NCBI GenBank assembly: GCA_964188305.1 | Contig: OZ076886.1 | Origin: Podarcis bocagei | Taxonomy: Eukaryota | Length of the DNA stretch: 64,000 nt | Direction: 5' to 3' (one strand) | Shown here: piece after piece, positions 7,411-61,706 of the stretch | Layout of the letters: every line of letters starts with the position of its first letter | Position numbering within the stretch: the first letter of the stretch is position 1 | The notes under the pieces: model-generated | What the model saw: the letters and a program-made list of their open reading frames with translations, nothing else | The model's database searches: none | Told to the model about the DNA's origin: nothing | Translations under genes and position numbers: made by a program

Positions 7411-9044
7411 ATTAGGCATTTAAATGCCAGGCAATGTCAGGGATAGTGTGCACCCAAATTATATATAGATAGAATGTGCTCAGTTTCTGTACGTAGACTG
7501 CCCAAGCTATATGTTTTAAAACTCCTACTTGCTTTTGCCTGGAACCTCCTCTTCTGGTAACACTTTGCCACGCCCTTGTAAATAACCTGTGTCCCTGTTA
7601 GTTACTGAGCTAAGGCAAAGTCATAAATAATGGTTACTGCCACTGATACAGGGGGTAAGCATGGACTAGAGCACACTTTGTGTCCTTTCAGCTGCAGTGT
7701 TGTGTCCAATGGGAAATTTGTGCAGTTGGAAAATGTACTTTGAAAAACCTGGAGTCCACCAACAACTAGAAGGGCACAGATTCTTCATACGTGTCCTGCA
7801 CACTTACACACATACGTACTGAAACCAATCCAGGAAATAAAAGAAGGCTGCAGAGAAATAGAGGGAAACCTACAAATGGAGGGAAGAGGAGAGCAAAGAG
7901 CCACAACAGTGACTGAGAAGAAGCAGAGCAGACCTTTCCTTTCACAGGAGCTCCTGGAGAGGCTGTCCCATGGAAAATTATAAAGGAGCTCCCAGCTCTT
8001 ATTTTGGGTGCAGAGCATTCATTGGTAGGTCTTTACTCCAAGTTTGCAGCAGCAAACTTAGATCCATGGCTTTGAGCCAGTGGAGAATGCAACAGCCATT
8101 CCTGAGCAAGGGAAATATTTGGGCAGGGGCAGGTGGTGGTATTAAACAGCCTTGCCTCTTGCATTTCTGGAAATTAGTCTGATTTAAAAACAAAAACAGG
8201 CAATTTTTGTGGATTGTATTTTTTATTTTTTTCTGGCACATTGGCAACTCTAATCATGAGCAGGAAAAAGTGAGGTCTCCTGTCTGGTCGGCCTCCTGCT
8301 CATGTTTTGTACCGAGAAGTTACATTTGTGTTCTCCCTGCGACTGCAGTCATAGAACCTCTTATTTCCAGTAATAGCTGTGATTCATTCTCCTTCTATTG
8401 TGCTAAAGTTCAGATAGTGTGGCTTTTTGTTAAGGATTCTAATCAGAAATAATATGTCATTAGACCAACTGCTGTACGGGATGGATCAGCAATCATCCCT
8501 ATCTGGCACTTATTTTGGCAGACAATGATGTTATAGTTGTTTGCTAACATTTATGCTTGCAGGTATACGTTAGTTTGTGGGTCATATTCTAACATTCCTT
8601 ACATTGCACTAGGACACACACACAGAAACACACACAAAAAATACGCATCACAGTCTCTAAACAAGTCAGTCAAGCTTTATTTATTTATATCCCCCTTTTT
8701 CTGCAACTACTGCACTCTTGAGGGTGCCTCCAGCTGACCTGTTTAATGAGCATTCATTCTGCTTTGCTTGCACAAGGCTTATGCAGAGGTTAGATTACAC
8801 CCGGTCTGAGCATTCATTTGGATTTGTTTGTGGGGCAGTTATAGGACCATAAGCATTCATTCTGAATTTATTCCCCCATCTTCCCACTGATCAAGTCCAT
8901 ACTCTATCCATTATTCCACACTGGCCTGGTTTGTACAACATGGTCAACCAGAGTATAGCTTGCTGTGGCTGTGCAGATGTGCTGGCTCTTGGTGAGTTTG
9001 TGCCCACTTTGTGCTTGCTTCCTCCCCAAGTCAGCACACGATAG

Positions 9045-11716: not shown

Positions 11717-12762
11717 TTTCTGTGTTCTTTAAAGGCATAAGCCTGAAACAAATGGACACATATATTTTTTCAAGCTTTCCACAGTGATCTTTACTGTCTG
11801 GGATGAAGACCACACCAACAGTGAGTGTGGGCAGGGCGAGGGGAGCACAGGTCTGTCTGGTCACTGATACTACTTGAGATGCAGAGCACTTTGGAGCAGA
11901 AATTTAATCCATTACTATGTTTGTGAACCCTGCACTGAAACATTACCTTTTGGTTTAGTCTTACAACCATCAAGCTCAGTTACATGGGAGCCCAGGAGAA
12001 GAAAGAAATGCACCGCTAACAATATGAAAATGCTGTCGGCCTCTTTAGAATGTGTGTGAATACATGCTCATCATATATGTTAACCAGGACTCAAGCGACA
12101 TTGGACAGCAGCAGGTCCTCTTATTTCAAACCAAGTCACATATAAGGAGGAACAGAGCAAGCTACCAAGTCTGTCTGCTGGTCCATCTAACTCTGGTTGC
12201 TTTAGTATGCAGATCATGTGCTCTACCACTTTCCTTTTCCTTTTTGGCACTCTCGCCCTTTTGCTCTAAAAATGGATTCTTGATCTCCACCCCTCCATTT
12301 AAATGTGACCAGGACAGGGCCAGGCTCGCCACTGTCAAATTTCATTTGAGCTTGCTCATCCATGTTTCCATTGCTTCCCCAAAAGCAATTGCCAAAATTG
12401 CTTGGATAGTTGTCTGTTCTGATACGGGTTTTCAAAGAAGGAAGATGGCACGTAGGGTCAGACGAGGTTACAGAAAATGTGCTCCTTGCATATCTTTGTG
12501 GTCTCAGTATTGTCTCAAAATGGTTCACAAGGGGGGCTTGCAACAAAGCATTGTGCTACAGCCTGCTCCTATTCGGTGTTCCAGCCAGCCAGCCAATCTG
12601 GAATTCCTCTAGGATACTTCATTTCATTCCCTCTCCCCACTCCAGTTTTCCAGGTCTCCTCTGACAGACAGCCCCCTGTTTGGGTGGGTGGGCCTTCCTT
12701 AAGACCCCCCCCCCAAATAACTTATTGAACTTTTGCAAACCCTGGCACTCCCCTAAACAAAC

Positions 12763-16495: not shown

Positions 16496-16967
16496 CAGTG
16501 GCGTAGCATGGGGGGTGCCAGGGGTGCCGGCCGCACCGGGCGCAACATTTGGGGGGGCGCGTTTAGCCGGCCCTCCTCGAGGAAGCAGGAACCCCACTGT
16601 CCTCGGACCTCCTCCAAAGGCTGGCGGTGGGGCGGAGAGACTTCCTCCCGCCGCCAGCCTTCGGAAGGCTGCTCCGAAGCCTGGCGGTGGGGCGGAGAGA
16701 CCTTCTCCCCGCGCCAGCCTTCGGAAGGCTGCTCCGAAGCCTGGCGGTGGGGCGGAGAGACCTTCTCCCCACGCCAGCCTTCGGATGGCTGTCCTGAAGA
16801 CTTGTGGTGGGAGCAGTGGCGTAGCGTGGGGGGTGCAGGGGGGCCTGCTGCACCTGGCGCAACATCTGGGAGGGGCGCGGAAGAGGCTCGAGTGCTAAAA
16901 TCCACGGGTTAGGGGGCGCAAATTACTTGCCTTGCCCCGGGTGCTGAGAACCCACGCTACGCCAGTG
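16496..16967. mobile_element. hAT (Tip100-like) element with internal 3 x 60-bp minisatellite
   Basis: TIR CAGTGGCGTAGC / GCTACGCCAGTG; perfect TSD CCCCCTTG; 60-bp units at 16621-16800; second left-end copy near 16814. Confidence 0.9.
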
Positions 16968-23566: not shown

Positions 23567-24185
23567 TAGTCACAGCCACACACCCTTCTAAAGCTATACA
23601 ACATTCTAAGGTTACACAATAATCTTATAATTATAGAATAATGATAATTTGCTATTGGTTGCAATGATCAATGCTGCTCTCCATGTGTCGCCTTTCAGCT
23701 AGGTCTACTATTTTCTGTGCGTGTACTTGGGCAAATTATTTGGAGCACTCCAATATCTCCTTTTGGAGAAGTTCTGTTTTCCTCAAAGTTCCATTCTACA
23801 AAAGAGAAGCTGCATGCCATTCTCTTGAAACCAAAGCACCATGTGTTTTCAGTGTTCCTAAGTGCTGAGCTGTGGAGCACACATGACTCCTCGGTGTTCT
23901 TTTTGCACGGCTTCTCCAGAGTGACCTCAGGAGCCAATCCTTAGTGGCGTACTCACTTCCTTTCACTCTGATTGGCTCCAATCAGCCCAAAGGGTGAGAA
24001 GGTTTCTTCTCAATGGGTAAAATCATGCTACTTGGGCAGCTCATTAGAGGCAGAGACCTAGTTATGGAAGAAACAGGAATGGGTTTTCAACACTGGACCA
24101 CCTCACCTATGCTGCTAAGCGAAACCTGGGCAGCGCAGCAGCAACATGACCAGGCGAGGGCACAGCGGCAGAAACCTTCGCTGTA

Positions 24186-24563
24186 AAAGGTAAAGGTAAA
24201 GGACCCTGGGATGGTTCAGTCCAATCAAAGGCAACTATGGGGTTGCGGGGCTCATCTTGCTTTCAGGCAGAGGGAGCCGGTGTTTGTCCACAGACAGGTT
24301 TCCAGGTCATGTGGCCAGCATGACTAAACTGCTTCTGGCACAACAGGACACTGTGGCGGAAACCAGAGTGCATGGTAACACCGTTTCCCACCACAGCGGT
24401 ACCTATTTATCTACTTGCACTGGTGTGCTTTCAAACTGTTAGGTTGGCAGGAGCTGGGACAGAGCAACGGGAGCTCACCGTGTGGTGGGGATTCGAACCG
24501 CCAACCTTCCGATAGGCAAGCCCAAGAGGCTCAGTGGTTTAGACCACAGTGCCACCCGTGCCC
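24186..24563 (-). mobile_element. Sauria SINE (Squam1-type)
   Basis: (AAAGGT)n tail, tRNA-like head with B box GATTCGAACC; TSD CTTCGCTGTA/CTTTGCTGTA. Confidence 0.92.
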
Positions 24564-28110: not shown

Positions 28111-28129
28111 CTCTGTTTTGCTCTTAGTA

Positions 28130-28504
28130 AAAAAAAGGTAAAGGACCCCTGACAGTTAAGTCCAGTCGCAAACGACTCTGGGGTTACGGCGCTCATCTTG
28201 CTTTACTGGCTGAGGGAGCTGACATGTGTCCACAGACTATTTTTCCGGGTCATTGGGTCAGCATGACTAAGCCGCTTCTGGCGAAACAGGAGCAGCGCAC
28301 AGAAACGCCGCTTACCTTCCCGCTGGAGCGGTACCTATTTATCTATTTATCTACTTGCACTTTGATGTGTTTTTAAACTGCTAGGTGGGCAGGAGCAGGG
28401 ACCGAGCAATGGAAGCTCACCCTGTCACGGGGAATTGAACTGCCAACCTTCTGATCGGCAAGCCCTAGGCTCTGTGGTTTAGACCACAGTGCCACCCGCG
28501 TCCC
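28130..28504 (-). mobile_element. Sauria SINE
   Basis: Full length; perfect 12-bp TSD TTGCTCTTAGTA. Confidence 0.95.
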
Positions 28505-33753: not shown

Positions 33754-34103
33754 GGGACGCGGGTGGTGCTGTGGGTTAAACCACAGAGGACTTGCTGCTC
33801 AGAAGGTTGGCGGTATGAATCCCCGCGATGGGGTGAGCTCCCATTGCTCGGTCCCTGCTCCTGCCAACCTAGCAGTTCGAAAGCATGACAAAGTGCAAAT
33901 AGATAAATAGGTACCGCCCCGGCGGGAAGGTAAATGGTGTTTCCATGTGCTGCTCTGGTTCATCAGAAGCAGCTTAGTCATGCTGGCCACATGACCCGGA
34001 AGCTGTACGCCTGCTCCTTCGGCCAATAAAGCGAGATGAGCACCGCAACCCCAGAGTCGGTCACGACTGGACCTAATGGTCAGGGGTCCCTTTACCTTTA
34101 CCT
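33754..34103 (+). mobile_element. Sauria SINE inserted in an older repeat (about 33695-34190)
   Basis: Head GGGGACGCGGGTGG, tail TTTACCTTTACC; TAAGGAAAAGC on both flanks. Confidence 0.95.
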
Positions 34104-36099
34104 TAAGGAAAAGCAGGAATCAAATCAGAAACTGGGATGGCTTCTGTAAATCCAGTACTGTCCCTAGAAAATAGGGGCACTTGGAGGGCTTGCCAGCTGT
34201 TGAGCTGGCAAGCCCTCCAAGCCCTCCTGGAGCAACCCAGCAATCCGAACCATTCAGTCCCAAGTACAGGTTACATTCAGTTCAACTCAGTTTGAAAGCA
34301 TGGTGGTTTGCAGTGGTGTTAACAGAGTGTCCTCTGTGCCTGCGATAATAGAACCATATTCCCACTTGCCTACAGCTCCCTCTCCAAAATCAGCTGACCA
34401 CAAAGTGTGGTCATGGACTGAAGACTGTGGCGGAAAGGGCATGACTTCTGAGTCTCCCTTTCTTCTCCTTCCCTCTTGCTCCCCACCACTTGGAGGAAGC
34501 TGTGCCTTCATCTCCCTGCGTTGACTCAGGGTCACAGCCTCTAAAAATAAACTGTTTGTATTGATTAACTTGGCTGTACCAGCAGCAGTGAATCAGCGAT
34601 AAGAAACTGAACCTAAACAAACCTTTACAGCACTTACGGCTGCCGGATTATCCCTGCAGCATGCGGCTCCCCAGAGGCCTTCTGTTTTCCACTTTCAGAT
34701 TATTAGTATATGGACAAAGAGAAGCTTTCAAACCAAGGGGAAAATTACAAATCTGAAATCGTCACTTCTTTCTCAGTAAACCAGAAAAAGATTTGTGTGG
34801 GTTCTTTTCCCTTTGCCAGGCACAGCTTTTCTAATGCAGTTCCATATGAATTGTTGATTGTAAACTGACCCTGTATAAACTTTCTGGAGAAGTTTAGTGT
34901 CAACTCCCATCATTTATTCCGAGGGGCACCTGAGTGTATATGAAATGATAGGATGCAATTAATTTCTCACCAGGGTAGAAAGCTTTAAAGTATGTTATTA
35001 ATCTTACCCTACTGGAAGAAGAAACAGCAGCTAGCATCTCAGCAGATCAATCTTTCACCTTATGTGGAATTAAATAAAAGAGAGCGGAAATATGCTTGTC
35101 CTTTGGTCCTCTTATTTCCAGGTTTCAGGTAGGTTGTTAACGAAGTCTAATTAAATTCCTGAGCCAATAGAAGGTTCCCAGTCCTCATTTCCATCAAAGA
35201 GAGTTTCTTATTAGACGAGAGGTGGCATGCTACCCTAAATGTAATACCTGGGTGAAAAGCAGATATGCTTCCAAACATTACTGTGTTACTGTAGGAAATC
35301 CAATTACAATAAGAGCATAGATACCCATAATTATGGCAACCTCATGATGTCTTTTGCTCCCATATCTCAAATAGCTAGCAATAAAACTGTAATCAGCATA
35401 TATAAACAATATGTGGATGTTGATCTCTGTTATTATGACCTCTCTCCTCAGGAGCATCCCATCTCTCCCCATAAGGATAGGTAATTGCTATATCAAGTTC
35501 GCAATCATGCATTGGGTTGCCTATAGCATTAAGTCACTCCCCATTCCAATTGTCCTGTAAGACTGGTTAGCAATTGCCTGGGCTGAGAGGAGACATTGCA
35601 GAATGTTACACAAACAAAGAATTATCACAGTGTGCGAGGTAATGGAAGATTCTGTCAAGGGTGCAACAAAAGGTGAATTCACCGGCCAACGACTTGCGGG
35701 ATTGTCAACTTTTAAAACATAATCTGGCACCACAGGTGGTATATCTCTGAGCATGTACAGAATGGAAAATACTTTAAAGCAAAAGCAAAGGACATCTTAG
35801 CCCATGCAGAGTGCCTTTCCTTTCTAAGCACTATAGGGTCAAGAGTGCCTTTGAAAGAAAGGCTGTAGCTCAGTGGCAGGTCACATTTCTTTAATGCTAA
35901 AGCCCCCAATTTCAAACCCTGGCACCTCCAGGGAAAGTCTCCTGTCTGAAACCCCAGAGATCTGTTGTGTGCTGCCTGTCATGCCACCCCACCCCCTGTA
36001 CAATTACCTCTGCTTTCAGGGGCTTTTTAATAAAATGTTTTCAACAAATGCAGTAAATACCCCACCTTCTAGCTGCTTGGCTATAAATGTTTTTTTCAA

Positions 36100-42672: not shown

Positions 42673-43014
42673 TAAAGGTAAAGGTAAAGGTACCCCTGAC
42701 CATTAGGTCCAGTCGCAGACGACTCTGGGGTTGTAGCGCTCATCTCACTTTACTGGCCGAGGAAGCCGGCATTTGTCCACAGACAGCTTCCGGGTCATGT
42801 GGTCAGCACGACTAAGCCGCTTCTGGCGAACCAGAGCAGTGCATGGAAACACCATTTACCTTCTCACCAGAGCGGTACCTATTTATCTACTTGCACTTTG
42901 ACTTGCTTTTGAACTGCTAGGTGGGCAGGAGCAGGGACTGAACAACGGGAGCTCACCCCGTTGCAGGGATTCGAACCGCCAACCTTCCAATCAGCAAGTG
43001 GTTTAGACCATAGT
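42673..43014 (-). mobile_element. Sauria SINE (5' end damaged)
   Basis: (AAAGGT)3 tail; body homologous to the other copies. Confidence 0.92.
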
Positions 43015-43166
43015 TTAAAATGCCCTGTTCTCATAGGTTTAAACTTAAACTGCGAGCGGACTGGAGAGGCAGGGAGGGTATTTAGAAAGCACAATACTCA
43101 GAGGCACACAAATGTCTGAGCAGAATAGTCTTCTCTCACACAACCCCTCTGGCCAATCTGCCATGA

Positions 43167-49836: not shown

Positions 49837-50360
49837 CGTAAGCTAGACCGGTAGCTGAATCTTACTTCAGCTCTGGTGATGGAAAGGAGTCCTTCACCAC
49901 AGCCTAGGGCAGCAAGTTAGTTATGGGACTGCAGGGCAGACCACAGGGCATACATTTCTAGCCACTTCCCGCACTTCAGAAATTGCCACCTTAGATAGCT
50001 GCTTCACTCTGCCTCATGCAGGGGCCAGCCTTGCACACCCACCCACCCCCCTCCGTCAATATGAATGAATAAGCTGAGGAGAGGAGGCAGTGAACAGGCG
50101 AGAGGGGAGGCAGAGTGTGTGCCATAGGCGCTGGCTCCAAGGGGCCGCCCCCTGGCTCCTCACGACAGCACGGCACATTGCACATGCGAGGCACATCACA
50201 TCGGGGCCCCTCAATCATCCTGAGAAGCTGGCGCCTCTGGTGTGTGCTAAGTCTTTGGGACTGTGCGTGCATAGTCCTGCCCACTTTGGAAGGCAGCCCC
50301 TAAGAGCTTTCGGCCCAGATTATGCCGCACTTAGACCCCAGAAAGGCTCCTTTAACTATA

Positions 50361-50721
50361 AAGGTAAAGGTAAAGGTACCCCTGCCCGTACGGGCCAGTC
50401 TTGACAGACTCTAGGGTTGTGCGCCCATCTCACTCTATAGGCCGGGAGCCAGTGCTGTCCGAAGACACTTCCAGGTCACGTGGCCAGCATGACAAGCTGC
50501 ATCTGGCGAGCCAGCGCAGCACACGGAACGCCGTTTACCTTCCCACTGGTAAGCGGTCCCTATTTATCTACTTGCACCCGGGGGTGCTTGCGAACTGCTA
50601 GGTTGGCAGGTGCTGGGACCGAACGGCGGGAGCGCACCCCGCCGCGGGGATTCGAACCGCCGACCATGCGATCGGCAAGTCCTAGGCGCTGAGGTTTTAC
50701 CCACAGCGCCACCCGCATCCC
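50361..50721 (-). mobile_element. Sauria SINE, CpG-rich variant subfamily
   Basis: Perfect TSD CCTTTAACTATA; (AAAGGT)n tail; intact B box. Confidence 0.95.
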
Positions 50722-52822: not shown

Positions 52823-52944
52823 GCAGGGATAGCTCAGTTGGTAGAGCATGAGACTCTTAATCTCAGGGTCATGGGTTCTTGCAGGGGGTTAGACTAGATG
52901 ACCCTTGTGGTCCCTTCCAACTCTACAATTCTATGAGTCTATGA
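52823..52944 (+). mobile_element. tRNA-Lys(CTT)-headed SINE with CR1-type tail
   Basis: GATAGCTCAGTTGGTAGAGCATGAGACTCTTAATCTCAGGGTC head; tail GGTCCCTTCCAACTCTACAATTCTATGAGTCTATGA. Confidence 0.85.
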
Positions 52945-54180: not shown

Positions 54181-54399
54181 TATGCGAATTGATGCTTACT
54201 TTTAAATTCCCGCATGTAGGCCCTTTTTTCCCCAACTGGAACTCACCAGAACTCAGTTCCGGCACCTCTCAGGTGAACACTGAGAGGCCGCAACAGCACT
54301 TTCCCTCCTGGTGCCATTGGGCCCACCCTCACTTAAATAAAGAGCACCCACCTCACAGAACACCACTTCCACGAATTCCCACAAACTACCCCAGATTAT

Positions 54400-55307
54400 C
54401 TTGTTGGAGAAGTGAAGTGACATCAGGAATATTGAGTGCCCTTGCGCCGTCAATGCTGCAGTCCTACCTCAGAGCTTGGTCGCATTTTGAGCGATTCAGA
54501 GCTAAGTTTGGTCCACAACATAGATGCACAGCCAGGGAGTCTGACGTCCTGAAATACTTCGTCTATTTGAAACAGAGAGGCCTGGCCCTCAGTCTACACA
54601 AGGCCACAATTTCCTATTTTAGTAATTGTTTGTGGCACCCTGACCCTTGTAACACGTTCCACGTAAGGAAACTAATTGCAGGCTGGCATCGCACACATCC
54701 TCCTACTCCAGATAAGAGAAAGCCAATCACCATTGAAACCCTCCAATTGATATGGGACATGCTCCCCAGTATTTGTTGGTCCAGCTATGAAGTCAGGCTC
54801 TTTCGAGCCCCCTTCTCTCTGGCCTTTTTTTGGTACGCTCCGGATTAGAGAGTGCGTTAGTGGCACACTGTCACCCCATCATAGGGGGCTGATGTCAGTT
54901 TCTGCAACCGCAGGGTGCACATCAGAATACGCGCCTCAAAAACCAACCAGCTAGGCAGGGGTACCATCCTTATGTTAGCACCCTCCTCTCAAATTGGTCC
55001 CTGCCCTGTCTCTGATACACGCAAATTCCTGAACGTGCGTCCACCTGGGCTGGGCCCTCTCCTGATTCATGCAACGGGTCGCCCTAGAACCCATTGCCAA
55101 TTCATTGCAGTGTTGCAGAACGCCATTCATGCTTGTGGAGGCAATCTGACATAATTCTCTGGTCATTCCTTCCGTATTGGTGCAGCAACCACAGCAGCTG
55201 CCAGTGGGCTCACTGCAGAGCACATAAAAGCAATGGGGCGGCGGTGCTCAGCCGCCTTTAAGGGCTATATTAGGCACAATCAACAGGCACTGACAAATAC
55301 TGTATAA
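54400..55307 (+). pseudogene. Tyrosine recombinase of the Ngaro element (disrupted)
   Basis: ALAPSMLQSY...PDPC...RKPIT...AFF/GTLRI.E, ASKTNQLGRG, CPV, stop at 55152, then GHSFRIGAAT...MGRR.S.AFKGYIR. Confidence 0.92.
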
Positions 55308-55319
55308 TTTTTTTTCCAG

Positions 55320-55903
55320 GCCTGACTCCCAAACATGTGTGGATCTTCAGCCACAGCATAGTGCATTGGGCAGCTGTCCATGCCACCACGGGTTCATCTG
55401 GCAAACATCAGGGCCTTCAGCCGAAGGTCACCATTTCCTGGTTTGGCCATCGTGGAATGTGCTCGGATGCACCTTGGTTGCGTCAAGAGCTTGCGTTCCG
55501 TCCCCCGCCAGATGCGGTTGTGTTCCACCTTGGCGAAAATAACTTGGTTGTTTGTAAGAGCAGAGTGCTGATGAAAACAGCAATCACAGACTTGGAAAGC
55601 TTACATGCCATGCACCCTAACATAACTATTTTCTGGTCAGAACTCCTCCCACTCTTACAATGGCGTGACAACCTCAAACCCACCAGACTTAACTACACTA
55701 TCGAAAAAATAAATAGGGCACTGCGCTCGGCAACCTCGTGCATCGGGGGTCGCGTTGTGAAGCATCCCAGCATCAAAATCTACCAGGAGGAACTCTTCAG
55801 GCCTGACGGAGTACACCTCTCAGCCATTAGTAATGATTATTGGCTGAGCGACCTTAGGCATGCCCTTTTGGAATGGATGGCGAATGGCGAAGGGTCTGTT
55901 TAG
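55320..55903 (+). CDS. SGNH/GDSL-family hydrolase ORF of the Ngaro element (open, no ATG start)
   Basis: Blocks VWIFSHSIVHWA (S), GHRGM (G), PDAVVFHLGENNL (N), DGVHLS (H); preceded by a 3' splice-site-like sequence. Confidence 0.8.
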
Positions 55904-57223
55904 GTGTAGGTAGTCTTGGAGGCAAGACATCAATTTTGCAGCCTCGGGTGGTGGTTTCAGGCCTTGGGCGGAATCCTTTAGTCTATCTTCCTAAATGGGG
56001 GGGGGGCATGAAGCGGTGACCCACGCTCCCCTTGTGGCAGTGATCTCAGGGTTCCCCGTTAAAGTGTTCTTGAGGGGAGGCATTGGCCATACGCCGAGAG
56101 GTTGTCATTGCTCTCCCCTCCAACAGTGGGGAAACAGGGGGCAGGCTCTCTGCTTGAACATATGTTCTCCAGAGCCAGCCCAATCCCCACACATTCTGGA
56201 TAACCCTGATGTCTCCCAGGTCTCCCAGGCTGGGTACTGGGAAGGATAAACACCCAATGCCTGAGCCAAGGTCTCCGTACATCTGAAATATAATAAAGTT
56301 GTGGCCAATTTTAATCCCATAGCATGTTGTCTTGAGTCATTATTCCGCTCAGGGGTCGCCTGGGGGGTGGGGGGACTCTGCCTGTCCACGCAATAAGCTA
56401 CTCCTACTTCAAAGGAAATAGTTCTGTTCATTCCAAGTAAATTTGAGGTAAACAAGGAGGAAAGGGCGGAATCACCATTAGGAAATTTCAGTGAAGATGA
56501 AATCTGTCAATGTATAGTCAAATCTGGAGTGTAGGGTTCAAAATAAAAATAAAAGTGAAAGGCTGTTTTCCCTGTCTAGAGTTCAACAAGCACAGCATTT
56601 TCTGTTGGGGGCAAAAGGGTGACAGGCCTAGAGAATAAGTAGCGGACCACCATATTTAATTGTTTCAAAGTCTAAAAATAAACATGAGCAAACATCAAGG
56701 GAGTTTAAAATGTTTGTTAAGAAATTCAGGGCAACAAGTGGCATGCCATATAATCTCTGGTTACATTCTACTCTTCAGAGCATAATGCCCCATTGTAAGA
56801 ATAGTACAATGTGCTGCGATTCCCTTACAATGGGAGTGTTGTACAACTGTCAGTGAATATTCAGAAGTGTGTGGTTGGTTATCACATAGACATAACAAAT
56901 ATTCATACATATTTATTTAAATGTCCAGTCTGACTTTCCAGAGGGAACAAACACACACACGTAAGAATGTACAGTATGGGCTAGGAGCAGCGACTGTCTT
57001 CAAAGTCTCAGGCAAAAAGGGTTCTCATCCCTGCAATTTGGGATTCGTTTTTAGTGGAGTTGGTAGAGACTGAACCTGGGGATTTTCCACATGTGAAGAA
57101 GAAACACATCAAACGAACCACGGCCTTTTCCCATTATGTAAAATCTAAAATATTATTTTATATCATTTAAAATCAGGCTAAAATAAAAGATGTGCTTAAA
57201 ACCCAGGCACTTACTTAACTCTA

Positions 57224-59589: not shown

Positions 59590-59949
59590 CAGGAGGTCCC
59601 GCTGGGTGCGCGAGGCTTGGGGCGGCAGCGGACTGCTTGCGCGCACCTAGAAGCTTGGGGCGGGCTGAGCTCAGCTGGCCCCAAGCTTCTAGGTACGCGC
59701 AAGCAGTCCGCTGCCGCCCCAAGCCTCGCGCACCCGGCGGGACCTCCTGCCGGGTGCGGGAGGCTTGGGGCGGCAGCGGACTGCTTGCCGGCACGCAGAA
59801 GCTTGGGGCGCACTGACCTCAGCTTGCCCCAAGCTTCTGGATTAGCGCAGCGCACCTGGGGGGGAAATAAATTTTTTTTCCTTTATTTCCCCCCCTAAAA
59901 TCTAGGTGCGTCTTATGGGCCGGTGCGTCTTATGGGGCGAAAAATACGG
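59590..59949 (+). mobile_element. Right half of a Tc2-like (Tc1/mariner superfamily) MITE
   Basis: Ends GTGCGTCTTATGGGGCGAAAAATACGG|TA; GC-rich palindromic interior shared with 61210-61706; only one TIR. Confidence 0.85.
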
Positions 59950-61168: not shown

Positions 61169-61209
61169 AATACAGCAGGCTAAGATATATGTTATAAAAA
61201 TGGAAGCAA

Positions 61210-61706
61210 GAGGTCCGACCGGGTGCGCGAGGCTTGGGGCGGCAGCCTGTCGCCCGAAGCACGGGGAGCCCTCTGGAGGGCTCCCCCTGCTTCGGGCGAG
61301 TGTCTGCAAGCCTCGCGCACCCGGCAGGAGGTCCCGCTGGGTGCGCGAGGCTTGGGGCGGCAGCGGACTGCTTGCGCGCACCTAGAAGCTTGGGGCGGGC
61401 TGAGCTCAGCTGGCCCCAAGCTTCTAGGTGCGCGCAAGCACTCCGCTGCCGCCCCAAGCCTCGCGCACCCAGCGCGACCTCCTGCCGGGTGCGCAAGGCT
61501 TGCAGACACTCGCCCGAAGCAGGGGGAGCCCTCCAGAGGGCTCCCCGTGCTTCGGGCGACAGGCTGCCGCCCCAAGCCTCGCGCACCCGGTCGGACCTCC
61601 TGCCGGGCGCGCAAGGCTTGCAGGCATTCGCCCCATAAGACGCACCCCGATTTCCCCTTCATTTTTGGAGGGGAAAAAGTGCGTCTTATGGGGCGAAAAA
61701 TACGGT
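61210..61706 (-). mobile_element. Left half of the same Tc2-like MITE, inverted relative to the right half
   Basis: TIR ...GGGGCGAAAAATACGG|TA at about 61680-61708; subterminal inverted copy TTCGCCCCATAAGACGCAC at 61628; nested palindromes. Confidence 0.85.

Follow-up and report, generated by a model that had tools for sequence, protein, structure and literature searches.

How can a retrotransposon express a 3' reading frame that has no start codon of its own, and does it mean anything when such a frame stays open beside a dead gene? The question is raised by a locus at 54.4-56.4 kb of a 64,000-nucleotide stretch of Podarcis bocagei DNA (GenBank assembly GCA_964188305.1, contig OZ076886.1; hereafter the window, by which we mean the whole stretch, with no N in its 64 kb). 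Here the remains of a tyrosine recombinase (YR) of a Ngaro retrotransposon are followed by an open reading frame (ORF) for an SGNH hydrolase. An earlier note on this DNA, based on the letters alone, had proposed that the hydrolase is made from a spliced subgenomic RNA in the manner of env, that its frame remained open while the recombinase died, and that the cassette of acceptor, ORF and polyA signal could be captured by host transcripts as a terminal exon. The explanation that best fits our observations, and which we hold with reasonable confidence, is that the window carries a decayed Ngaro fragment, that the SGNH ORF of its relatives is a spliced exon fused to the N-terminus of ORF1, and that the frame of the window copy is open by luck.

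The part of the window on which the first question turns is organised as follows.

55288..55294, plus strand: branch-point-like CACTGAC within the last YR codons, its A lying 26 nucleotides (nt) upstream of the AG (from the sequence).
55308..55319, plus strand: candidate 3' splice site, T8 CC AG, right after the YR stop; its position and phase match the acceptors of five database gene models.
55320..55903, plus strand: predicted SGNH esterase exon, phase 1, first full codon at 55322, stop TAG at 55901-55903 (1130 relatives, family profile, AlphaFold2, Foldseek).

The T8 run occupies 55308-55315 and is followed by CC, the AG at 55318-55319 and the exon-start G at 55320. The SGNH frame, which differs from that of the YR, is uninterrupted from 55274 to the TAG (209 codons); ahead of the nucleophile Ser it has no in-frame ATG, and a GTG at 55337 is the sole alternative start. 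Acceptor-like motifs of similar strength occur 56 times on both strands of the window (4.4e-4 per nt), and the chance expectation for such a motif in the 66-nt slot between the stop that opens the frame and the first strand of the fold is about 0.03: the placement of the acceptor is more than chance. CACTGAC is plausible as a branch point and does not appear to be a conserved element, as branch-like motifs lie at varying distances in the related loci. Thus CACTGAC, the T-tract, CCAG/G (the slash marks the junction), the ATG-less frame with its S, G, N and DxxH blocks and the polyA signal discussed below are all where the earlier note had placed them.

A word-index protein search with the window ORF gave no match. 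An exhaustive search returned 1130 relatives, 505 of them below 1e-10, so the blank of the former reflects a limit of its sensitivity. The homology of these relatives always begins at query residue 17-22, that is at or just past 55320, and the nearest named proteins belong to lacertid lizards, one gecko and frogs. Numbered from 55322, all catalytic blocks are present: S12 (55355), G45 (55454), N73 (55538) and D162/H165 (55805/55814), each in an invariant or near-invariant column of the alignments of 141 and 41 homologues. The same protein has Ser in place of the block-I Gly and Asn in place of the Asp that follows the oxyanion Asn.

The Pfam model Lipase_GDSL_2 scored the window ORF at 23.2 bits, below its cut-off of 32.9, and the SGNH domains of intact relatives also remain under the cut-off. 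By sequence, the family forms a divergent branch, has GHS in block I and is poorly captured by Pfam. The closest solved relative of the single window sequence is 4c1b, the esterase of the ORF1 protein of the zebrafish long interspersed nuclear element (LINE) ZfL2-1 (E 0.016), and a family profile of 42 domains searched against the PDB again placed 4c1b first (E 5e-9), ahead of acetyl esterases and GDSL lipases. The AlphaFold2 model of the window SGNH has a mean predicted local distance difference test score (pLDDT) of 91.7 and a predicted template modelling score (pTM) of 0.88. With Foldseek, 137 PDB matches were obtained at E <= 0.001; the best 50 of the 137 are all of SGNH/GDSL type, with template modelling scores up to 0.73, and the matches include PAF-acetylhydrolase-like proteins as well as 4c1b. 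The assignment of the ORF to the SGNH/GDSL hydrolases, with a predicted three-layer alpha/beta/alpha fold, is sound, and profile and modelling bear out the identity that the earlier note had read from the motifs.

The window copy was compared with seven related loci of six species (lacertid, cordylid and anguid lizards and one frog), which gives eight loci in all: L001 of Zootoca vivipara, L002 of Podarcis muralis, L003 and L004 of Podarcis lilfordi, L006 of the frog Mixophyes fleayi, L007 of Elgaria and L008 of Hemicordylus capensis. Five of them (L001, L002, L004, L006 and L008) carry ORF1, reverse transcriptase (RT), RNase H (RH), YR and SGNH in that order; the coding regions of L001 include an RT (RVT_1, 52.9 bits) and a 304-residue YR, and L002 and L004 have split direct repeats, A1...B1 A2 B2, of 98-100% identity. 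Gene order and repeats identify the relatives as genuine Ngaro elements, and the Ngaro-like nature that the earlier note ascribed to the window copy agrees with this, since its YR matches that of L001 (see below). The nearest relative of the window copy is L003 (47% in SGNH).

In all seven related loci an AG follows the YR stop in the identical codon phase. Its distance to the codon of the Trp in the first beta-strand is exactly 20 nt in the window and in L001-L004, all lacertid, and 26 nt in L006, 32 nt in L008 and 29 nt in L007, the phase being kept throughout. Of the features whose conservation the earlier note had proposed to test, the AG keeps its position and phase in eight loci, and the branch-point-like motif is not conserved in its distance.

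Five database gene models (P0008, P0015, P0012, P0041 and P0133), which come from two annotation sources (NCBI and the P. lilfordi genome annotation) and five species (four lizards and one frog), are spliced at this AG. All five consist of an N-terminal stretch and an SGNH domain at the extreme C-terminus. The junctions were fixed by joining two exons per related locus and checking the translation against the database protein, and each model fits its locus by one unique two-exon GT-AG structure with exact translation. The predicted gene structure is as follows.

Exon 1 of the five models: the start of the element's own ORF1.
Donors of P0008, P0015, P0012, P0041 and P0133, in this order: CAG/GTTCGT, CAG/GTACGT, CTG/GTACGT, TCG/GTGAGT, CGG/GTGAGT.
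Donor position: past codon 153-241 in four models, counted from the model ATG.
Donor of P0012: past codon 98; the ATG of this model sits within a longer open frame.
Introns: 3382-3895 nt, holding the remaining ORF1, RT/RH and YR; phase 1 in 5/5.
Acceptors: a pyrimidine tract and C/T-AG soon after the YR stop, about 11-50 nt past it in the lizard loci.

The ORF1 frame continues across the donor in L001, L004 and L008, which means that the splice would be an alternative one. In L002 the unspliced ORF1 is interrupted and the spliced frame of ORF1 N-terminus and SGNH is intact. This element is very young, as its repeats are 100% identical, and its ORF1 stop (8733-8735) lies nine codons past the donor. 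The donor of L002 is at 8706 and the acceptor at 12111. A related sequence is the Logan contig L005 (1677 nt), in which an N-terminal region and SGNH are joined intronless; its N-terminus resembles that of Anolis sagrei models of the same architecture.

Splicing in the tetrapod relatives is therefore well supported by comparative anatomy, and we infer that the gene models reflect real mRNAs. The env-style RNA of the earlier note stands as regards the acceptor, which is conserved and is used exactly by all five models, although these are products at the level of gene models only. It does not stand as regards the product, as the donor lies in ORF1 and the SGNH exon would yield a fusion and not a separate ORF.

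Several points weigh against this interpretation. The splice evidence consists of NCBI/ENA gene models, possibly partly ab initio, and of L005, and includes no RNA reads; L005 is either a cDNA or a genomic intronless copy, and its run accession, SRR6291285, occurs in no searchable paper. A search with the spliced-type protein P0015 found genome annotations only and no transcript-derived (Logan) proteins. Every locus was reached via an intact SGNH protein, so the sample is biased, and it is made up of lizards and one frog, with the fish Ngaro elements, in which the family was first described, outside it. Finally, it is conceivable that the pyrimidine tract past the YR stop functions in replication and not in splicing.

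The last point leads to the rival explanation that survives best, namely that the pyrimidine tract and AG are kept as some other signal, of replication or recombination, and that the gene models are prediction artefacts. The reliance of the splice case on gene models, and not on inspected transcripts, speaks for it, as do further conserved non-coding islands in the 3' region of the elements. However, a donor in ORF1 and phase 1 are common to all five models, which stem from two annotation sources and five species, and all five donors agree well with the 5' splice consensus. Moreover, the AG holds its distance and phase to a coding frame, which would be needless for a non-coding signal, and an intronless contig of N-terminus and SGNH exists. 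We therefore consider this explanation improbable.

A shade less probable still is the translation of SGNH from unspliced RNA, whether by YR read-through or frameshift, by re-initiation or from an internal start. Single loci appear to invite it: in L001 SGNH and YR share a frame with one TAA between them, and in L003 an ATG lies four codons ahead of the first strand, at which a depositor-annotated protein of 189 residues begins. Across loci, however, the frame relation of YR and SGNH differs from one to the next and the AG may lie as little as 11 or as much as about 590 nt past the YR stop. An in-frame ATG before the Ser is found in 3/8 loci, at non-homologous positions, and the window and four other loci have none. 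This variability of frame and spacing, together with the absence of a conserved ATG, speaks against both read-through and an SGNH start of its own. The constant features are the AG and its phase, and not any feature linked to the YR stop. Neither of the two arrangements that the earlier note had set against splicing, an ATG of the ORF's own and YR read-through, is thus conserved.

Returning to the spliced fusion, we suggest that the intact element has the layout A1 - ORF1 - RT/RH - YR - SGNH - B1 A2 B2, in which SGNH forms the 3' exon of a message that arises by alternative splicing. The AG past the YR stop would be joined to a GT donor within ORF1, with removal of a phase-1 intron of 3.4-3.9 kb, and the message would terminate at the AATAAA in the B repeat. 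With the donor far inside ORF1 and an in-phase intron, the protein would use the ORF1 start codon and carry 150-240 ORF1 residues, and as this start codon is borrowed, the SGNH exon needs no ATG. The product, starting at the ORF1 AUG, would be a fusion of a disordered ORF1 N-terminus (about 150-240 residues) with the SGNH esterase. At the end of this N-terminal part, lacertid elements have a basic cluster and then an acidic or serine-rich stretch. By analogy with ZfL2-1, the esterase domain may act on or bind lipids or acetyl esters in particle assembly.

The second question concerns the window copy itself, whose recombinase has the following features.

54396..55307, plus strand: YR pseudogene covering the whole 304-residue YR span (tblastn with the YR of the Zootoca element and three-frame reading).
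54825..54831, plus strand: first YR lesion, a T7 run with one T added, which shifts the frame ahead of box-I FFGxLRI (frame 0 reads ...SLAFF, and GTLRIRE continues in the next frame).
54885..54890, plus strand: second YR lesion, a compensating frameshift that restores the original frame, position approximate (by comparison with the intact YR of L001).
55152..55154, plus strand: third YR lesion, an in-frame TAA shortly before GHSFRIGAAT (by translation).

Residues 1-304 of the L001 YR match window positions 54396-55283 in tblastn with 40.5% identity (E 7e-62). Three-frame reading of 53.7-55.95 kb revealed the landmarks AFFGxLRI, SKTNQLGRG and GHSFRIGAAT and the C-terminal Tyr region, and the C-terminus reads ...QQALTNTV, followed by the TAA at 55305-55307. 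At the second lesion the shifted frame ends ...HHRGLM and frame 0 resumes with DVSF...RIRASKTNQLGRG. The L001 YR exceeds the Phage_int_SAM_1 cut-off of Pfam and the three pieces of the window YR have no Pfam match; homology was therefore set by tblastn against the intact relative. With two frameshifts and one in-frame stop, the recombinase is dead, as the earlier note had concluded.

A search with the L001 element found no match to ORF1 or RT anywhere in the 64 kb, the matches being limited to YR and SGNH. When remnants of RNase H were sought upstream of 54396 with relaxed settings, only noise was obtained, which places the 5' break of the fragment between about 54190 and 54396. Its similarities identify the 54.4-56.4 kb segment as a truncated and mutated squamate Ngaro copy that extends from the YR start to approximately the end of B1. 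With the donor and ORF1 missing in cis, this copy would be unable to make the fusion protein from its own transcript.

Does the open SGNH frame of such a fragment carry any meaning? The YR carries 3 lesions in 912 nt; at this density the 579-nt SGNH exon should have about 1.9, and the probability of finding none is about 0.15. The protein departs from its family at 6 of the 30 columns that are at least 85% conserved among 141 homologues (G10S, L30Q, W48S, D74N, R111L and G170S). The median number of departures at these columns is 2, and only 6/141 homologues reach 6 or more. The residues lost are the invariant block-I Gly, the Asp after the oxyanion Asn and four others conserved in at least 92% of the homologues. 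At columns invariant in the six intact loci the window departs at 4/30 in SGNH (13%) and at 6/52 in YR (12%), the latter being read with X at each break for column counting only. The rate in SGNH equals that of the dead YR, so there is no differential constraint, and the open SGNH frame of the window copy is probably due to chance. The contrast that the earlier note drew between an open hydrolase and a dead recombinase consequently loses its significance, in a copy that lacks ORF1, donor and RT. A comparison of how often SGNH and YR are disabled across loci was rejected, as all loci had been found via an intact SGNH protein; both are intact in 6/6 comparison loci.

It is very improbable that the acceptor-ORF-polyA cassette of the window was adopted as a host terminal exon and kept open by selection, for although the 209-codon frame is intact beside three YR lesions, catalytic S, G, N, D and H are retained and host models end in such an exon elsewhere (Elgaria ZNF318-like, Bombina PRP39, Zootoca ZNF638-like), the lack of lesions is within chance at the YR's density, the six replaced residues include the block-I Gly and the Asp after the Asn, the departure rate is that of the dead YR, and no upstream exon or donor was identified.

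The 3' part of the fragment comprises the following.

55904..56400, plus strand: 3' untranslated region, identified as the B repeat of the Ngaro split direct repeats, with conserved islands, end approximate (alignment with four lizard elements, blastn islands).
56292..56307, plus strand: AATAAAGTTGTGGCCA, polyA signal and conserved downstream motif (exact 16-mer common to L001-L004).

The AATAAA of the polyA signal is at 56292-56297. The 16-mer AATAAAGTTGTGGCCA is located 353-429 nt past the SGNH stop in all four lacertid loci L001-L004; it is present in two copies (B1 and B2) in L002 and L004 and once in the window, where a single B-like segment without a repeat partner was found and not the A1...B1 A2 B2 pattern.

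A copy in Podarcis lilfordi (L003, 6993-8980) is truncated like that of the window, as it starts about 90 nt before the YR and has one B-type repeat. Upstream of the element outline that the two share, no DNA similarity was found between the window and L003. The alike ends of these two independent copies may reflect a recurrent rearrangement or a defined sub-element.

A GC-rich hairpin-like island, TTGGCGGCGAGC ... GCTCG ... GGCGGTTAGGC.TTGG, lies right after the SGNH stop in five lizard elements. Its positions, from the comparison of the elements, are as follows.

Hairpin-like island: window 55913-55965; L001 14687-14745; L002 12722-12790; L003 8590-8665; L004 12253-12312.

Four predicted pairs are preserved by changes on both sides, and the island may act in cis as a signal on the RNA or cDNA of the element.

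Host capture of such exons in general is plausible. A strong acceptor, an ATG-less frame of fixed phase and a polyA signal of their own mean that fragments of this kind would act as terminal-exon traps for the host. This part of the earlier note is borne out by the Elgaria ZNF318-like model (P0057), whose last exon encodes SGNH and begins, in phase 1, after a pyrimidine-rich CAG, with a YR C-terminal remnant just upstream of the exon and an RNase H remnant farther up. C-terminal SGNH exons were also found at the Bombina PRP39 locus, in a Zootoca ZNF638-like model and in a Eublepharis ZNF318-like model (P0022).

Two Ngaro fragments (L007 29525-31777 and 35712-37630) are situated in or at the end of one Elgaria ZNF318-like model. 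SGNH is near full-length in both, RT, RH and YR are fragmentary or missing, and the second fragment is the terminal exon.

Proteins of the same SGNH family also occur in teleosts. The group of P0074, P0087, P0089, P0099, P0120, P0141, P0145 and P0146 consists of proteins of about 950-1960 residues with a conserved linker, ...EDDIKAKQKKRLEQFN..., and a C-terminal SGNH domain, and is found in Salmo, Astyanax, Denticeps, Nothobranchius, Gymnothorax and Muraenolepis; a Cyprinodon protein of 291 residues adds to these. P0074 has cold-shock domains, and P0145 is annotated by name as a cold-shock-domain protein. The group looks like a conserved host gene, which may have captured the Ngaro exon long ago or may have been its source.

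Multiple SGNH matches were observed in a gecko model of about 3100 residues from Sphaerodactylus townsendi (P0001 and members of its cluster), with six matches at about 27% identity, and in P0002, P0004, P0005, P0010 and P0011, with four domain matches each. Such models either contain the domain in tandem or run through more than one fragment of the element.

Taking these observations together, we tentatively propose, with somewhat less than even confidence, that the SGNH protein of tetrapod Ngaro elements is an alternatively spliced fusion to an N-terminus in gag position, so that splicing would lead to the design of an ORF1 protein with an esterase that the CR1/L2 LINEs encode directly, that fragments of the elements would be terminal-exon traps, with the ZNF318-like, ZNF638-like and PRP39 models as candidates, and that the teleost SGNH proteins would be an old capture or the source.

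Apart from the Ngaro fragment, the window contains several other repeats.

24185-24562, 28126-28504, 42673-43040 and 50359-50721, plus strand, and 33787-34104, minus strand: five copies, 66-88% alike, of a squamate-type short interspersed nuclear element (SINE) starting AAAGGTAAAGGTAAAGG...
61206-61603: GC-rich palindrome of two 199-nt arms, 97% complementary and 0 nt apart.
16609-16811: GC-rich tandem repeat of three 60-nt units (83-92% alike), within a 179-codon minus-strand ORF.
52828-52885: tRNA-Lys-like sequence by eye, with CTT at the anticodon-loop position, adjoining a (CA)n/(GT)n run.

The SINE copies, together with best protein matches from lacertid lizards, mark the host as a squamate. 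The palindrome has related copies at 59590-59915, and the two form a small family of inverted and direct repeats. ARAGORN made no tRNA call at 52828-52885, which is probably the head of a tRNA-derived SINE.

For twenty years the hydrolase ORFs of Ngaro elements have figured in descriptions as additional ORFs. Their presence is well documented and their function unproven (PMC9210276, PMC7192593, PMC6681497). No searchable paper ties Ngaro to a spliced hydrolase message, and the string 'splic' has 0 occurrences in the paper on the Xenopus elements (PMC9210276). Within the searchable literature, which does not cover the original Ngaro papers, the splice strategy that joins ORF1 and SGNH appears to be undescribed. 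If the fusion is real, it places the enzyme with the gag-like protein and the element RNA, and it relates the Ngaro enzyme to the ORF1 proteins of LINEs that carry an esterase, which are better studied. The interest thus lies in a mechanism at the level of the family; the window locus is an ordinary decayed fragment, and nothing functional is implied for it. For annotation, caution is advisable, as the genomes of lizards and frogs hold many gene models, some of them host isoforms, that end in this transposon exon.

The closest described elements are DIRS-53_XT and DIRS-54_XT of Xenopus tropicalis, Ngaro-like elements with a hydrolase ORF that are reported to have four overlapping ORFs (PMC9210276). 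Their gene order is the same as in our lizard and frog relatives: a gag-like ORF1, RT/RH, YR and SGNH hydrolase. However, whereas the Xenopus elements were described in terms of overlapping ORFs, the relatives analysed here point to a fusion of ORF1 and SGNH across an intron of 3.4-3.9 kb. The window copy differs from them in being without ORF1, RT/RH and the A2-B2 repeats.

In another known system, retroviruses and long terminal repeat (LTR) retrotransposons with a third ORF make spliced subgenomic messages; this ORF3, env or other, is typically expressed in that way (PMC5408684). There, as proposed here for Ngaro, a 3'-proximal extra ORF without a dependable start is reached by removing pol as an intron, and the polyA signal of the element is shared. 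On the other hand, the Ngaro donor lies well within ORF1 and in phase, so that the product would be a fusion with 150-240 ORF1 residues, and Ngaro belongs to the DIRS order, whereas the ORF3 elements compared with it are LTR elements.

As regards the protein, the nearest counterpart is the ORF1 protein of ZfL2-1, a CR1/L2 LINE (4c1b). This protein was found to be hydrolytically active and to bind phospholipids of negative charge, and it has been proposed to take part in particle assembly associated with membranes (PMC3905857). Both activities are established for ZfL2-1 alone; the Ngaro SGNH is known here from its sequence and predicted fold. The two differ in block I (GHS in the Ngaro family, GDS in ZfL2-1), their identity is about 20%, and the ZfL2-1 esterase is contiguous in ORF1 with a coiled coil, whereas in the Ngaro relatives the esterase would be joined to the ORF1 N-terminus only by splicing. 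Nevertheless, the SGNH fold appears to be the same, and in both systems the esterase would be part of the first polypeptide of the element, in the position of gag.

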